Shown here: positions 24-64,000 of the stretch, piece by piece
Position numbering within the stretch: position 1 is the stretch's first letter
Layout: the number at the start of each line of letters is the position of its first letter
Assembly (NCBI GenBank): GCA_010909165.1
Contig: MU008163.1
Coordinates: forward strand, 2,152,409-2,216,408
DNA length: 64,000 nucleotides
Source: Anthoceros angustus
Lineage: Eukaryota > Plantae > Anthocerotophyta
Direction of reading: 5' to 3'
Translations under genes and position numbers: made by a program
The notes under the pieces: generated by a model
Told to the model about the DNA's origin: nothing
Databases searched by the model: none
The model's input: only the letters and a program-made list of their open reading frames with translations

Positions 24-3000
24 CCAAGTGCAGACACAGTCATTATTTATGGTACGTTATCCCTCCAGTTAATTATTAGGGGTTTTTTTGTCTTAGTGGG
101 AGTTTTCGTCTCTCTTGGTGTGCCCAAACTTTGGGTCCGCCAGACAGATCAGGATCATGCGGTTTCGGTTGTGGCTGCGCAGACCCAGATTTCAACCCAT
201 TTGTTGACCTGCAAGCTCAGGCACGAGCACATCGCATTGGCCAAGTGAGGACTGTGCTTGTCTACCAGTTGGTCACTAAGTGTTCAGTAGAGGAGAAGAT
301 ACTGCAAAGATCTAGAAGAAAGCTTGCTATGGAAAACATAGTTATGAGTTTGACTGCCAAAGAGCAAGCTCAGGAGCTTAGTGAACTACTTTTGGAGGGG
401 GCAAGATCTGTTTTGGATGAGCAGAACATGGAGGCTACTTCAATTAAATACAGTGACGAGGATCTAAAGCAGCTTATGAACCGTGATATTGGACAGAATC
501 CTGAGCATGCAGCAGAGACAGCAGGATATCTGGGAGCTATACAAACAACCGATGATGGCCAAAAGCACAACTCAATGCACACGGAGGGAAGCAATTGGGA
601 TGAACTTCTTGGTAATCTCTCTGATGAGGGTGAACGATCGGAGGAGCTCGGACGAGGAAAACGGAGCCGTAAGGATGTTAAGTATGTGTGTGATCCGGAG
701 GGATGTGAAGATGAAGACGATTATCATGTGTCTCAGGAGAAGGAGAGCTCAGAATCAGATTCTGAAGCAAGCTTAGATCCTGAAGAACCACCTTCGGTTA
801 CAAAGCCTTCAAGGTGTAAAACAAATCTGCAAGCTTTTGACCATGAGGGCAGTCCAGGAGGTTTGGAGCTAAGTCAAAAGTCTACACAAAGAGGTTTGGA
901 GCTCAGTCAAAACTCCGAGTTATTAGTTACAACTGCAACCTCTGGATCACAGGTGTCCTCTGGACTCTTAATCCAACCTAATCTCCCTCGACATTCCTTT
1001 GACTCCAACAGATTTGCCCGATTGCTGCGTACCATACCTCAAGGTCAACCAACGACAAATATAACATCTTCTGGACAACGGCGCCCAGAAGTCCATACAA
1101 TGGCTTTGTTACAGTCTCTGAACCAGAATTTGTCAGGAGGAGCAGCTGGCCACCTTCAAAAGGTTCCGCTAGTTGATGCCAAACAACTGTACCATGTTGG
1201 AACACCCAAAGAATACTGTACACCTATCATCGGATTTGGTCATATGGCCTCTTCTGAACTGCAGCAACCAGTGCCTCTGAGAGGGCACACTCTTCCGTTG
1301 TTTGGTGATGGATATAAGGATTCTGGTGGACCTCTGAATGGGGGGTTTCACCAAGTGCCTCTACGTCACGTGGAGCCTGTTTGTGAGACAGAACAAACTC
1401 TTCGACTATTTGATGACAAAGTGCATTGTACTGGTGGAGCGTCAACCAGACCCGTGGAGTCACCCATGGGGCAGTTCCTCCAGCTGCCGCCATTTCAACT
1501 GGTTTCCGGTGGACCACCTCGTGGAGGACAGATTCTGTCACTGTTTGGTGAGAAACACTTGGGTGCTGGTGGAGCGTCTGGAGTGTCTCCAAACCCAGCT
1601 TCTGGCCAGTTCCTGCAAATCTCTCCTTCAATTCTAATGCGGCAAGCTGTTCCTAGTGGAGCACCTGTCAATGCTTCTCGACGCGATCCTGTGGAGGTGG
1701 TTTCTACTTTCAGCAGGTATGTGGAAGGCATGAGTCCATCCTGCATTCCCACCAACAGGCCTGCTGGTGATGCTCCTCAGTGTAGGACTGACATGCTCTG
1801 CAAGCACAGAGTGCCCAACTTCCCTGTAGAGAAATGTCCAGTGTCTGCGTCTGCATCACTTGAGACAAGGAGAGAGAAATTCGAGGTACCGAAGTTGGAA
1901 GTTGTGGACTGTGACCCCATGCAACATCCAACCTCTGGACACCCAAAGTTTGGGCAGAAGTCAATGCCATGCGAAATACGTCCTGAAAGTCTGGAGGAGT
2001 CAACATTATCACTTGCGGAGAGCTTGCTCACATCCTCCCTTGCTGATATAAGGACTCGTGATGTCTGTTCTGTTGGAACTGTCCTGTCATCTGCTGGGCA
2101 AGCCCCACCAGACTTGAGGTGTGTGGAGAAATCAAGGTCAGTCGGTGTCCCCAGAAACGCTGCTTCAAGGAACATGCCTGGATCTGCTGTGCCAGTTGAT
2201 ACTGCAGAAAACTGCCAAGAATACTCTAGCGTCCCTTGTTCATTGGATTCTGAACATACATTTGTGGCAGTTTCTGAGGCTGCACAGGTTACTGGAGCGG
2301 TGAACAGAGTAGATGTGGTGGAGAAAGTGATCAGCTCCTTTTACACAAGCTCAAATGGTTCTGAACTTGCAACAGACGTCTTCCAGCATCAAGCTAGAGT
2401 TTCCGAGGTTGGAGACTCTAAGGCAGACATGGCTTCTCATCACTCTAGTACTGCTGAGCTTCGGGTCTTGGGGACTATGCCCAGTAACGTGCCTCCTTTT
2501 GACATTCTTACTTCTCTCGCTGTTGTAGATATGCCTACCCCAGCCAGTAAGTCTGCAGCCCATGCTAGCGTTATCCCCAGTGTAGCTTATAGGTCGGATT
2601 TGGATACATATTTTAGTGCTTGTCCAAACTCTAGTATCTCAGCCCTAATGAAGAGCTTAAAGCTCCCTGTACCTCCGGCCCAGTATTCTGAACCTCCCCA
2701 CATCCCTACCATGACTTCTAATGCTCTGCCCTCTGTGTCTTCCAGACCAACTACTTGTGTGTCCGGACATTCCAACCTGCCTGTTGAACCTAAGGTCATT
2801 TTTGGGTCTGCAGATTTACCTGCAGCTTCCAAATTGTCATTTCTGGAGCCACATTATGTGAATGAGGTTCGTCCTGCAGTGTGTGATGTCAATCCAAGTT
2901 CAGGCTTCCCTTTTACTCCCGCTTGTTCTCCTGTTGACATTTTAGACGCTAATTTTTTTGGTTCCAAAACTTCGGAGTCTCGCCCATCCCCCACCTGTCA

Positions 3001-3367
3001 GAGTCTGCGGGGCGCATCCTCTCCCAGCTTTTCTTTCTCCCCTCCTGCCCTTTCAGATGCCCCCACCCACCTTCCGGCCGACCCCAAGGAGTCCCTTCCT
3101 CCTCCAAAGATGGTTCCCAACTTACCTCAACCCCAACTTTTGTATTCTGGGTTACCCAGGGACTGTTCCCTGCTTAAGAAGCCTGCCTCCAAGGCAGATG
3201 CTCGGAAACCACTGTGGGTCCCCTCAGGTGAAGCAGGCATGCTCATGTTACATTCAAGGAAAGAGCTGCAAACTCTTGACAGTGAAATGAAGACTCATGG
3301 CAATGGTGCGCTGCCTTTCCAACATGACTCGAGGATTGTTTCCGACACGGCGAATCCAGCCTCTTGA
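24..3367 (+). CDS. CHD3/PICKLE-type SNF2 chromatin remodeller, 3' part (helicase-C end, DUF1087-like motif, long low-complexity C-terminus); 5' part lies outside the window
   Basis: Exon 24-51 (PSADTVIIY) splices GT..AG to exon 183-3367 (DPDFNPFVDLQAQARAHRIGQ...VYQLVTKCSVEEKILQ), matching SNF2 motifs V/VI. W-x-x-LL and EELGRGKRSRKDVKY match the CHD3/PKL motif after the helicase. Confidence 0.85.
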
Positions 3368-57773: not shown

Positions 57774-59564
57774 CTAAGCTGAAGGTGGATGCTTGTCTTT
57801 TCGGTTTATAATCTCCACCTCTAGAACTGACAGCCGATTCTTTAGCTTTTCCACTTCAGATTCCAAGTCTTCCGCCGAGCGCTCTCCATCGTTGCCTGGG
57901 GTTGGGGGTTTATAAGGAGTAACTAGATTCGCAGAGAATGACTTCAAAGACTCAACTCCCTGAACCTGAAACATGAGTTGTGGATAGAGTGGTCAGGTGG
58001 TCACAAGCTGACACGCCAAACTCAAACATGGACAGAACCAAAGACAGCAAACATCAGTGGTGGATAGAGTGATCAGGTGGTAATAAGCTGACACGCAAAA
58101 TTCAAACATAGTCAACACCAAAGACGCAAACATGATACCTCTTCTGGAAGAAGTGGCAATAGTGTAATGTGAAAGCCATCATAAAGTTCATGGAACTGCT
58201 CTAGATATTTCTGTTGCATTGCCACCCTTGCTTTTAACAGTCTGGAGTCGTCAACTGTATACAAAGGCAGATGGATATCAGTCATACAAGAGAAAAGGGA
58301 GTGACACAACATTTGATCAACCTGTGATTGCGTCAACTTATAGAAATTACCGTCTTCCTTGAACAAAACTTGATTGATTATAATGTTATGTGTATCTATG
58401 TCGAATTTAGCAAGCTCCTGCACTAGTCTTTCTGTTTCATACAGCGAAAGGAACTCGGGTATGCAGACACACACAAACGTTGTAATTTCCTGCAACAAGA
58501 TCGAGTTTAGCCAAATATGACTAGATTAGCGATGCAATGAAGAGAAGGCACGTTCTGCCAAGTGGTACTACGTACTGGATCACCGAATTGCTTGTTGACC
58601 TGCTCTATCGCTGCCTTCATCCCTTCCACCTTCCCCATAATGGCATCCTCCTGAATATCATCCGCTGCACCAAAAAGGCGTGACATCTGCAGCATCAGGT
58701 GCAAGCTCAGTGACGCTACAAGTGAAAATGTGACAGACGAGGAACCGGAAACGTCCACTCCGATGCAGCAGGCTTGGAGAAAACGGCACCTGGTTGAATA
58801 TTCCTCCGAATCTGTTCTTGAGAGTCATCACCCTGTCTAAACCCTTATCCAAGATAGAAGGAAACTGCAACAATCTTAACGTGTGGCCGGTGGGAGCAGT
58901 GTCAAACACTATGACAGAATAATCCATCGTCTGCACAAGCCTGTTACGACACAGGAAGCATGCATGAGGATGCAGAAACATATCCCATCCCTTGTCCAAT
59001 CAGCCAGTCGCCAACTTACTTCAGCATCTCAGCAAAGCTCATGGCTTCGTCAATCCCTGGAATAGCATTAGCAAGCTCCGCCACAAACCCTTCCATCCCC
59101 TCGCCCTGCTCAAGCTCATCGTTTTCCACAGTGGGATCCACCTCCTGCGCGAAACAGGGATCCCACAAAACCTTAACAATCATCCCAATCTCCGGCTCTG
59201 GTGCTATGCAATCACGAGAGCATTCCGTACAATCAACCTCTCGAACAACGCAAATTCACAAGCAAGGCCAGGAGCCATCACGAGAACTACACGGGAGGAG
59301 GCACACCATGGCAAAGAGGTTGGTGAAGCCATTGACAAGAGTTGGAGACCTGGTGAATTTCTGACGGAAAGCGTCGCTGAGGTTGTGAGCCGGATCTGTG
59401 GAGATGATGAGCACCGAATCCCGCACCTCTGCCAGCAACACCGCCAGCATGGAGCTGCAGGTGGTCTTCCCCACGCCACCCTTACCCCCAACGAAGATCC
59501 ACTTCAGACTGGTCTGTTCCAGCACATTCTTCAGGGTAGGCTCCAGCACCTCCTCTGAAGCCAT
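57774..59564 (-). CDS. GET3: GET3/ArsA/TRC40 tail-anchored protein insertion ATPase, cytosolic type, multi-exon
   Basis: [93 protein letters not shown]. Confidence 0.96.
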
Positions 59565-59990
59565 GCCTCGCCTCTCTTTTAAGGACTTGTCACTCACTTC
59601 CGAAACGCGCCAACCCGATCCGACCCTCCCACAGGGTGTATCTATGATGGCGTTATCCCGCGTAGGGGACTGGCAAATTCTTCCTCCAACAAACTCATAA
59701 AGTCGAGACCTTTTTCCCGACTGAGTGGTACATTATTATTTATTGGCACTGTCCGTGAGGCCGCCGCGGAAACATAGCGGTCAGTAACAGCGGTGTTACC
59801 GGCCTGTCTAGTTTCAAGTTTTTATTGAATAATAAATATCGTGCAGTTATGTCGGTAGTTCTGAACTTACACTCACCCATATGTCGTTCTTGGAGGCGGT
59901 AGGTAGCTTCGTTTTCACAAAGTTAGGAGTCTCATGCTGATGCATAGGCCATATGATATAGTAGGTACAAGATATTGATCTAGGTCAAGA

Positions 59991-60128
59991 GGAGCCAGGA
60001 TCGCGGTGTGCCAGGAGCCAGGAGCCAGGAGCGCGGTGTGCCAGGAGCCAGGAGCGCGGTGTGCCAGGAGCCAGGAGCGCGGTGTGCCAGGAGCCAGGAG
60101 CGCGGTGTGCTAGGAGCCAAGAGCGCGG
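59991..60128. repeat. 23-bp minisatellite (ccaggagccaggagcgcggtgtg), about 5 copies
   Basis: Direct inspection; the units abut with no spacers. Confidence 0.9.
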
Positions 60129-60639
60129 GAGTCAGGTGCCATGAGCTCCATGAGACAAGAGGCATGCAGTAGTGCAGTGTCCGTGGTGCAATGTGAGGGG
60201 TGCGTTGCAGCGGGAGGTGGCGAGGCATGTGGGGGGCGTGGCGGGTTGCAAGGGCCGGCCTGTGCCCATGGGCCAGTGCAGGTGGTCGGGGCCCTCATCA
60301 GCGCCGGGCCCCCACGGCCTCGGTCGCCTGGCACGCCAGCCCAGGCAGGCCGGTGTGGCGCGAGGGGTCTGGCCACGAAGGGCTGGGTCTAGGGTTCCAA
60401 GACTCTAGGCGGGGCCTTGGCCCCTATGGGGGCTTCGTCTGCAGTGCACTCTATATGTCTGGTAAAGGTCGGGGACGTTTTTGTCTCCGACCCCTGGTGC
60501 CTCCCTGACCCTGACACCCTCGGGCTGTTGTCCGCAAGTTGTTCCTTGTATTCTCTTTTTACCGTCTATCGTAAGCAATTTTGCATCTTCCTATTATTGT
60601 TTGTTTTTGGGCTCTCCCCAATGGTGCAGTCGACCCCTT

Positions 60640-61690
60640 CTAGGACAGTCAAGGATGCTCCCTGCCTGGTCTACGCTCAATTTTGTTGTGGGGTTAAGGG
60701 GGGGAAATGTCACATTGGGCACAACCACAAGGACTTCAATTGTACCACGTGGGAGGCTTAGGTGAGGCTTGCTTCTTCCAGCGCGATTGCACACCCGACT
60801 TCGGGTTTGGCTGCTCCCTTTGGGCCGCCTCGAGAGTCCTGGTAGTGATTGCGCTTGTAGTCGGATCATCATCTTGTCTTGTACGAAGTGCGTTTTTTGG
60901 GGCCCCGCATTTTTCGGCATCTCCTGAGGCGCCTTTATGATGACGTTCGCCTTGCCTAGCGCTTCCCTTGGAGCGCCTCGCACTCAACCCCGGGGATGAG
61001 GTGGCCTAGACTTTATTCCTCTTTCTCCCTTGGTGGTATCTTTGCCACTTCATGGGTGGTCATGGTTGGTCCTTCAGGGCATAGCGAGGTGGCTGCCTGT
61101 CTCCACCATTTCTGGGGTAGGGACTGGGACGCCCTGGAGGAGGAGGGGGGGGGGAAGGGGGCATCCAGCGAGGTCCATGTTGGAGTCGGCTTAGGCGGAT
61201 CAGGTCCGTCAAGATCCACGAAGGTGCGTCTTAAGAGGTGCCTCATGCTAGGCCATGTTGGGGAATACGCTAGGGCTGCCCAGGCTCTTCGCCCGGAGCC
61301 GGTGGTGCTATCGTCCGAGGAGACCATCGTTGCTCTCCGCACCCTTCATCCAGCCCCAGGTGACCTCATTCTATAGGATATCCTGGATTTTGTGGTGGAG
61401 AAGCCTTTTTGTCTTGACAAGGCAGTCTTCAGCAAGGCTCTTACCACTGCCCCGCGGCTTTCTTCAGGTGGTCTGTCTGGGATAGTTTATGACCATCTTC
61501 GGAATTATTTTGCTCCCGAGGATCCTTCTAGTGGTTTTTCGGAGCTTTTCATTTTAGCGGCGATCGTGGAGAGGGGAGAGACCCCCCACCAGATCTCCCA
61601 GGTGTTGGGTGCCAATAGGTTGCTAGCTATGGAGAAGCCAATGCCTGAAGTGCGCCCTATTGCCGTCGGGGAGGCGGCCGTCAGAGTGCC
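60640..61690 (+). mobile_element. Non-LTR retrotransposon fragment, CRE-clade-like RT N-terminal region, disrupted
   Basis: HFWGRDWDAL...RCLMLGHVGEYARAAQAL..EETIVALRTLHP [TAG 61374] ..ALTTAPRLSSGGLSGIVYDHLR..RLLAMEKPMPEVRPIAVGE. It breaks off before the QGDP and YxDD motifs. Confidence 0.75.
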
Positions 61691-63589
61691 AACCCATCTG
61701 GTCTAATGCCGAGGAAAAAAGGGAATAAAGTTAATTACCCAAAAAACATACTGGAGGTGTTTGTGAATGAAACAGTCATCCTGTATTATGGGTTTGTGTT
61801 GAACGCACTGAAACATTTGTATGCGGTGGACAAAAAAGCGATAAGGAATAAGCTCTGCGAGTTGCGCGGCTTCATACAGCCTGCGTGTCAAAGTGCCGCT
61901 GAAGATTGTGATGACAATGCTGGAGAAGCTGGACCAAGTAATGACAAAGGATTGAACTCTGGGGATGAGTGAAACTCAAATCACAGTTTGTCCCGAGGTC
62001 CTAGAGTGAATGTTGTACGTCCGGTTCCAGATGTTACCGTGTTTTGGAAATACCCTGTCCGTGGCTTTTGTTGTATCCTTACTAAACCATTTTCCTTCTG
62101 GAACTGAATTTACGGTGGTCCCTTCCCGGCAAAAACGGCCTTCCTTACAGATCCCACTTTGCATTAATCTTATAGATTCGAGATTGCGACCACCGTTCGA
62201 CAGAGACATTGCTGGTTGGAAAGCAGTATCTTTACCAGGTGACACCCTTTTTTTCAAAGATGTTTTCCGGGATTAATAATAAACGCTGGTTTAGGTCCCA
62301 TCAAAAACCCCCTTTAGAGGTTATTTACAGAAAACCCCCATCGGGATTATTCACCCCCTTCAAAAATTATGGTGTTGCCCATGTAACATGCTCCCGTCGC
62401 CCCTCGTCCCCTCCCCCACTGCATTAAGCCAATAGGACCAGGTAGTGTAGCCCGGACATGGCAGGTGCACCGCATCAGCATAGCAAACATAAGTAGAGGG
62501 TTCCGCTGGAGAGAATGTGCCAGAGAAGGACATGAGCTGAAATGCTAAACAAACGCCGTGACAAGCTGTGTTACCTCAGAGGTCCATGGCCTTCCTAATG
62601 CGACAACACTGCTTCACATCTTGGGAGCCGCGGTATGGGTGAAAGCCGCTGGCGGCTCCTCTTCCACTCGGGTTCCTCCCACTCACTAGTGTTGGTGTTG
62701 AGTAGCAGATCTGACCGGAGCCTGGAACCGCCAACTCCCGCCCCTGTGGCCGCCCGCGCCGGGGCACCAGGAGGAAGTGGATGTCCTCCACACTTCCCTA
62801 GGTGGCGGGGGTCCGCCTGCACGTATGGAGTCCGAATCCTCCCACTGCCCTCCTCCCGACCTCTTGCCCGGATGGCCGCCTCCGCTTCCGCACTCTTTTC
62901 CTCGCCTCCTCGGCCAGCCCTAGTGCTCGCTCCTCACCTCCTTCGTGGAGGTTCGCGTGCCCACACATGGATCAAGAACGGCGAGCAACGCCGACGGAGG
63001 TGGCTTCTCGACCTCATTGCGAGCCTCGCTGATCCGGCGAAATTATTGCGCCCCTGCTGCTTCTCCTCTCCGAGGTCGTGGAGGAACACCAGCAAATTGT
63101 CTCCAAGGTGGTCCACCTTGGTCAGCATGTTCCAGTGGACTATAATCTTCGCCACTGATCGCACCCTCCTGTCTAGGAGGTCCGACATCAGCCACCCATT
63201 TGAGGATCGCTGCGTCCCGGGTCGCAAGAGGGCCGCCCTGGCCGCTTGTGGAAGACCACATGTGCACTAACCCCGCTCCCAAGTGTCAGGATGAACGATT
63301 TTTTTTTGTTTTGGATGTGTTAGAATAGTAAAGTGCTTTGAGAATTGTCTGAGTCAAGTCTTTTATACGGGAATGGTCCTTGGCCCTTGGAATAATAATA
63401 ATTTTTCAATCCTCAAGTTTGGCCCCAGAGGGGTGGGACAGAAATAGAGTCCTTGGGTATTGGGAATTTTTAGAATAAAAGGTGTCTATATATGCTAGGG
63501 ATGCTCACAATATGCCAGTTGAGTAGTCAAGTGGGGTGGTGGCTAGTTCCACCACGGTGGCAAAGCAGGACGTCTGAGACGGGGAATTT

Positions 63590-63892
63590 ACAACGTTGAA
63601 GTTGGCGATCTTGGCCGAGTAGTCGGCGACGCGGTCCAGTCGCTCGACGCTGAGGGTGCGCCCGGACACCGCCGAGACGCTGATCGGCACGTCCTGCAGT
63701 TTTTCTTCGCGCTTGCGCGCGACCACCACCACTTCGTCGAGGGCCGCCGCGACGGCGGCGTCCGTGGCCGGGGCCGTCGGGCCTTCGGCGGCCATGGCCG
63801 GGACGGCGGCCCAGCCCAGGGCGGCCGCCCGGCTCCGGCCAGAACGCGTTGACGTAGACGACGCGACAAGAACTGACTGCTCATTGCTCCCG
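63590..63892 (-). pseudogene. 5' fragment of a bacterial TonB-dependent outer-membrane receptor gene, with one frameshift
   Basis: GGGAG RBS, then ATG 63884 (MSSQFLSRRLRQRVLAGAG); after a 1-nt shift near 63828, AAALGWAAVPAMA|AEG...ALDEVVVVARKREEKLQDVPISVSAVSGRTL..ERLDRVADYSAKIANF. This is a signal peptide, TonB box and plug start. GC is about 83% over 63721-63840. Confidence 0.9.
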
Positions 63893-64000
63893 CCCGGCGC
63901 CCGGACCTCGCAAGCCCAAGGCCTAAAACTATCGAGACGGTAGGAATTGGCGTCGGGCGCGGCAAAGCAGATCAATTGAGGCGGCGAAGGCCTTTTCTAA

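Follow-up and report, generated by a model that had tools for sequence, protein, structure and literature searches.

A Caulobacteraceae receptor gene fragment joined to plant DNA in an Anthoceros angustus assembly is very probably contaminant sequence

The window, that is, the whole stretch of 64,000 nucleotides analyzed here (contig MU008163.1 of the Anthoceros angustus assembly GCA_010909165.1), is plant nuclear DNA with an overall G+C content of ca. 0.48. It contains genes for a 945-amino-acid (aa) PPR protein with an E motif and an F-box/RCC1 protein, together with TANGO6-like and CPP1-like open reading frames (ORFs), while a further ORF of 1,078 aa (131 to 3367, plus strand) gave no Pfam match at an E value of ≤0.001. 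By eye, exon-like ORFs with a loop and a DPAHN motif at 58507 to 59597 (minus strand) resemble a GET3/ArsA-type ATPase gene, and ORF pieces at 60996 to 61706 (plus strand) resemble the N-terminal region of a decayed non-LTR retrotransposon reverse transcriptase. Very GC-rich stretches are found at 60000 to 60500 and at 62600 to 63100. Judging by the retrotransposon-like pieces and the GC-rich stretches, the plant DNA that precedes the right end of the window looks like repeat or intergenic DNA; its flank next to the junction listed below is single copy within the window. The right end itself carries the following features.

63593 to 63594, no strand: plant/bacterial junction, blunt, with no shared bases and no microhomology
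63594 to 64000, minus strand: Caulobacteraceae chromosomal segment, equivalent by blastn to L008:5728-6145 and L011:2878-3295 (reference contigs), open-ended at the window edge
63594 to 63884, minus strand: first ca. 97 of 783 codons of a TonB-dependent receptor gene (signal peptide, TonB box DEVVVVA, and plug start), cut after NFN, as seen in translations and in alignments to full receptors
63885 to 64000, minus strand: bacterial intergenic region upstream of the receptor gene, the same as in L008 and L011 except for three deletions
ca. 63888 to 63892, minus strand: ribosome-binding site GGGAG (GGGGGAG in the reference)

The bacterial segment comprises the last 407 bases of the window. Its G+C content is 0.683, compared with 0.421 in the adjoining 311 nucleotides (nt) to the left (63283 to 63593), and the GC3 of its coding piece is 0.915, compared with 0.54 to 0.63 in the plant ORFs of the same window. 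The count of 100 G/C among the 120 bases from 63721 to 63840, given in the original prediction, is exact. By blastn, the bacterial match stops cleanly on the left at 63594, close to the limit of about 63590 first proposed, and reaches base 64000 on the right; the rest of the 64-kb window had no match to the bacterial loci. Since there is no N anywhere in the window, the join lies inside the contig and not across a scaffold gap. The segment had been described as embedded in plant DNA, but this is not confirmed within the window, where a single plant/bacterial junction is visible, host DNA lies on its left side only, and the bacterial sequence continues as far as base 64000. By chance alone, the edge of a window would seldom fall within a short insert.

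On the minus strand, GGGAG is followed by an ATG at 63884, from which MSSQFLSRRLRQRVLAGAG is translated. After a change of frame, the reading continues in a second frame as AAALGWAAVPAMA, then AEG...DEVVVVARKREEKLQDVPISVSAVSG...DYSAKIANFNV. This second frame has no start codon that would give a normal signal peptide, so that a one-base frame error is the natural reading. The signal peptide (MSSQFLSRRLRQRVLAGAG continued by AAALGWAAVPAMA, ending before AEG) and the TonB box DEVVVVA that follows are thus present but split over two frames by a deletion at 63828. All of the elements of a bacterial N terminus that had been predicted (ribosome-binding site, ATG at 63884, signal peptide, TonB box, and plug start) were found on this strand.

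The assignment to the TonB-dependent receptors was borne out by alignment, in which the fragment is in register with the N termini of complete receptors bearing the Pfam Plug and beta-barrel domains. Among these are the ORFs of loci L001, L002, and L003, in which a Pfam scan detected both domains; the intact source gene described below has both as well. The fragment itself is too short for a Pfam match, and none was obtained; too short also for the PDB, a sequence search of which returned chance matches only, it gave weak matches to the N termini of TonB receptor models in NCBIfam (E = 0.0015). Only the first ca. 45 residues of the plug domain (PF07715) lie in the window, and the 22-strand beta-barrel (PF00593), present in the reference ORF, is absent from it. 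With the gene cut at 63594 after ca. 97 of 783 codons, the copy in the window cannot make a receptor.

Several searches led to relatives. Among the matches listed by tblastn and pattern scans, sphingomonad and gammaproteobacterial receptors had 43 to 51% identity, and the tblastn search against plasmids gave only distant sphingomonad receptors. A peptide-pattern scan of genome contigs gave relatives at 43 to 48% identity among the matches listed, the true source not being one of them, and a word-based protein search with the fragment gave only relatives at 44 to 56% overall identity. Closer fragments in ENA run on after NFN as ...KIANFNALQQNTRVSTLTIRGVG, which places the end of the homology in the window exactly after NFN.

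The source was reached through a degenerate DNA pattern derived from the peptide DYSAKIANFN, with which JGI metagenomes were scanned. In two of the five loci recovered, L008 (8.6 kb) and L009, the match to the window extends from base 64000 to base 63594. Aligned to L008 from 6145 down to 5728, these bases showed 406 identities and a single mismatch, with five gaps that add up to 11 columns. The similarity search against bacteria that the original prediction had proposed thus ended in near-identical Caulobacteraceae contigs, matching 406 of the 407 window bases, and its guess of a Caulobacter- or Sphingomonas-like source proved sound, the donor being a Caulobacteraceae bacterium.

In the reference, the receptor ORF (L008:3671-6022, minus strand) is intact and encodes 783 aa with Plug and TonB_dep_Rec_b-barrel domains. 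The exact protein is indexed in 73 blocks of a public collection, among them a ruminant-gut metagenome (ENA), where it lies on a 1.2-Mb scaffold, five NCBI assemblies, and three Logan runs; the sources label it "Caulobacteraceae bacterium" (MBQ1541578.1). A protein of Caulobacter sp. CCUG 60055 (WP_242923569.1) falls into the same 90%-identity protein cluster. The 12 contigs fetched from JGI, ENA, NCBI, and Logan do not differ at any of the 418 bp that match the window, and over 5.3 to 7 kb they are mutually 99.8 to 100% identical with zero gaps. Judged from their sequences, they are one clone met in many unrelated samples, and such a spread over many unrelated studies is how a contaminant that is widespread in laboratories or cultures behaves. 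The genera published from blank controls include Caulobacter (PMC4228153; PMC7291729).

The surroundings of the receptor gene could be followed on these contigs. At L011:2227-8352 (L008:671-6800 reversed), the receptor gene is followed by genes for an MFS transporter and two TauD/TfdA dioxygenases, all in the same orientation; by its gene content, this looks like an uptake and oxidation locus, the substrate of which is perhaps an organosulfonate. A 183-aa Crp-like HTH gene precedes the receptor gene and, in L011, ends 100 bp before the point at which the window stops. The clone contigs from NCBI (L013, L016, and L018 to L020) and Logan (L014, L015, and L017) are only 5.7 to 7 kb long, and several of them share an end point at L008 position 7130. 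A 655-bp contig deposited as Maribellus luteus encodes the MFS protein of the clone as well (RIJ44640.1), and other public assemblies, too, seem to contain the clone as a low-level contaminant.

The alignment to L008 located the six differences between the window and the reference as follows.

63640, minus strand: single substitution
63747, minus strand: 3-nt deletion in a GGC repeat, with one Ala codon lost
63828 to 63830, minus strand: 1-nt deletion in a G run (GGGG in the reference, GGG in the window), the frameshift of the earlier reader
next to 63889, minus strand: 2-nt deletion in a G5 run in the ribosome-binding site
next to 63903, minus strand: 4-nt deletion in a CCGGCGGG repeat
next to 63925, minus strand: 1-nt deletion in a T5 run

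The aligned bases are 99.75% identical to the bacterial clone, with the noncoding upstream region included. All five gaps (11 nt) are bases missing from the window, each in runs of T or G or in GGC/CCGG repeats, and because the 12 contigs are gap-free among themselves, these indels are peculiar to the window and absent from the natural variation of the clone. Five deletions against one substitution is, on the evidence of the alignment, an error spectrum and not a mutational spectrum. According to two reports (PMC9262707; 10.1101/2021.10.14.464465), residual homopolymer-length errors are typical of long-read assemblies without short-read polishing; the error pattern, rather than metadata, suggests that this assembly is long-read based.

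The plant part of the window behaves differently. Its Pfam-bearing ORFs (PPR, 2,838 nt; TANGO6, 2,136 nt; RCC1/F-box, 1,386 nt; and CPP1, 801 nt) are uninterrupted, and at 5 indels per 407 nt, ca. 88 frameshifts would be expected in these ca. 7.2 kb of domain-bearing sequence, where 0 were observed. With five deletions in 407 nt versus none in ca. 7.2 kb of plant ORFs, the tail is far less well supported than the plant part.

These results bear on whether the fragment might be an older horizontal transfer that has decayed to a pseudogene and been inactivated by a genuine frameshift mutation. The frame is indeed interrupted at 63828, and 63594 is where the gene is cut short. The G postulated as missing near 63828 is present in the public reference, which has GGGG where the window has GGG, just as predicted. 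However, the further claim that the gene was already pseudogenized is not supported, in that this frameshift is one of five homopolymer or short-repeat deletions and the reference gene is intact. An old transfer is also hard to reconcile with 99.75% identity at aligned bases to a living bacterial clone, noncoding upstream DNA included, and with a GC3 of 0.915 that has not drifted toward the plant values of 0.54 to 0.63. The segment has neither diverged from its donor (1 substitution in 407 bases) nor taken on a host-like composition. The apparent pseudogenization is an artifact, and we consider an older, decayed transfer extremely improbable.

The original prediction had left two readings side by side, a recent bacterial integration already pseudogenized or a chimeric read or contig. 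With 1 substitution in 407 bases compared to a clone present in at least 12 unrelated contigs, other differences that are deletions only, and a single junction, the second reading is favored. We are highly confident that the last 407 bases of the window are contaminant Caulobacteraceae DNA that was attached by misassembly or in a chimeric long read and escaped polishing.

Under this explanation, bacterial DNA would have contaminated the sequencing material; its origin could be a bacterium growing on the surface or between the cells of the cultured plant, or else the water or reagents of a laboratory. A piece of it would then have been attached to plant sequence, either in a chimeric long read or by an erroneous join during assembly, probably at a contig end, in which case the end of the window would also be the end of the contig. 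Without short-read polishing, the tail would have kept the consensus errors of raw long reads, here bases lost from homopolymers and from short GC repeats, and one such error would imitate a pseudogenizing frameshift. A published hornwort genome project (PMC7027989) illustrates how this could come about. There, the raw reads were dominated by bacterial reads at ca. 0.7 G+C; k-mer depth served to filter the Illumina reads, MEGABLAST served to remove prokaryotic sequences from the corrected Nanopore reads and again from the preassembled contigs, and the Nanopore assembly was polished with the cleaned Illumina reads only. A workflow of that type, which may not be the one used for this assembly, would let a mostly plant chimeric read pass with its bacterial tail unpolished.

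At the junction, the reference reads ...AACTTCAACG followed by CCTTGCAG, while the window reads ...AACTTCAACG followed by TTGTAAAT. A scan of the junction for adapter remnants, with ONT, SMRTbell, TruSeq, and Nextera sequences, gave no match above background, an absence that is compatible with a chimera. Contaminant DNA could also have been joined by the assembler, through a false overlap or graph error between a plant and a contaminant contig, so that bacterial DNA would continue well beyond 64000. The bacterial match has not ended where the window ends, as such a join would have it, but no sequence is shared at the junction that could have caused a false overlap, and we regard this variant of the contaminant explanation as rather unlikely. 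Exact look-ups of 20 window ORFs, three of which span the junction, found none in the public protein collection, and both an exact look-up of the PPR gene and a homology search with the flanking 211-aa ORF were blank, yielding no independent contig across the junction.

Close to the junction, there is also a direct repeat.

63559 to 63586, plus strand: left copy of an imperfect 28-nt direct repeat (21/28 identical, with a 10-nt exact core), the partner of which lies at 63961 to 63988 in native bacterial DNA

The motif GAGACGG..GAATT, which had been reported on both sides, does occur at 63577 and at 63935. A target-site duplication was considered and rejected: the right copy of the repeat is native bacterial DNA, identical in L008, and the two copies are only 75% alike; furthermore, the GAGACGG..GAATT motif and the 10-nt core appear in opposite order on the two sides. 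An equally high repeat score was reached in 1 to 5 of ca. 550 comparisons with other pieces of the window (P of ca. 0.01, for a repeat that was chosen after the fact), and the right copy is 370 nt from the junction. The repeat is probably due to chance, although it could hint at a templated repair event.

Such an event would belong to a very recent, true integration of Caulobacteraceae chromosomal DNA into the plant nucleus, for instance during double-strand-break repair. The donor would then be a cosmopolitan strain inhabiting the plant or its surface, the insert would measure at least a few hundred bases and be so recent that hardly any substitution had arisen in it, and the indels would be assembly errors on top of a true insertion; the fragment, consisting of a promoter region and the first ca. 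97 codons, would have no function. Bacteria are reported on and between hornwort cells (PMC7027989), the junction lies in continuous sequence without N, the plant flank is single copy in the window, and near-identity to the donor is expected of a very recent insertion as much as of a contaminant. The direct repeat near the junction (21/28) adds to this, at the P value given above. Nevertheless, only one junction is seen, a single substitution stands against five deletions, and the same clone turns up in a ruminant-gut metagenome and many other unrelated data sets. In addition, the right copy of the repeat is far from a junction that has no microhomology. Taken as a whole, as well as in its details of donor, extent, and superimposed errors, a recent integration appears very unlikely to us.

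In order to put the fragment into perspective, it can be set beside known cases. Compared with the receptor MBQ1541578.1, from which it differs by 1 substitution and 5 deletions, it has the same start codon, signal peptide, TonB box, and plug start. However, the window holds only ca. 12% of that gene, lacking the plug body and the barrel, and its frameshift at 63828 and missing Ala codon at 63747 are best taken for sequencing errors. Contaminants read as horizontal gene transfer are described in reports on the tardigrade Hypsibius dujardini (10.1101/033464), the mite Oppiella nova (PMC12507336), and the moss Physcomitrellopsis africana (10.1101/2023.10.30.564737). The likeness consists in bacterial sequence that appears in a eukaryote assembly, near-identical to free-living bacteria and without host adaptation. 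The difference is that the bacterial piece here sits gap-free on 63.6 kb of plant sequence; since the bacterial DNA is physically joined to plant sequence, whole-contig screening would miss it. The reagent contaminants compiled by Salter et al. in 2014 (PMC4228153) include Caulobacter, and the clone found here likewise recurs in unrelated studies, but unlike for those reagent genera, an origin as an epiphyte or endophyte of the plant culture is also possible.

Accepted transfers from bacteria to plants in bryophytes and hornworts, on the other hand, involve complete genes that have diverged from their donors, often have introns, are expressed, and are common to related plants (PMC12448838). 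The window resembles them in having a bacterial gene beside plant DNA, but none of these traits applies to the fragment. We think it very likely that the bacterial segment is not a real feature of the plant genome.

The value of this case is mainly one of quality control. Bacterial tails fused without a gap to plant sequence survive decontamination at the level of contigs and can be mistaken for horizontal gene transfer, and an error in a homopolymer can look like a pseudogenizing frameshift. Should the junction be true after all, the captured piece would still be functionless, since only a 5' gene stub is present, and the locus would offer a rare snapshot of the capture of bacterial DNA by a plant nucleus.
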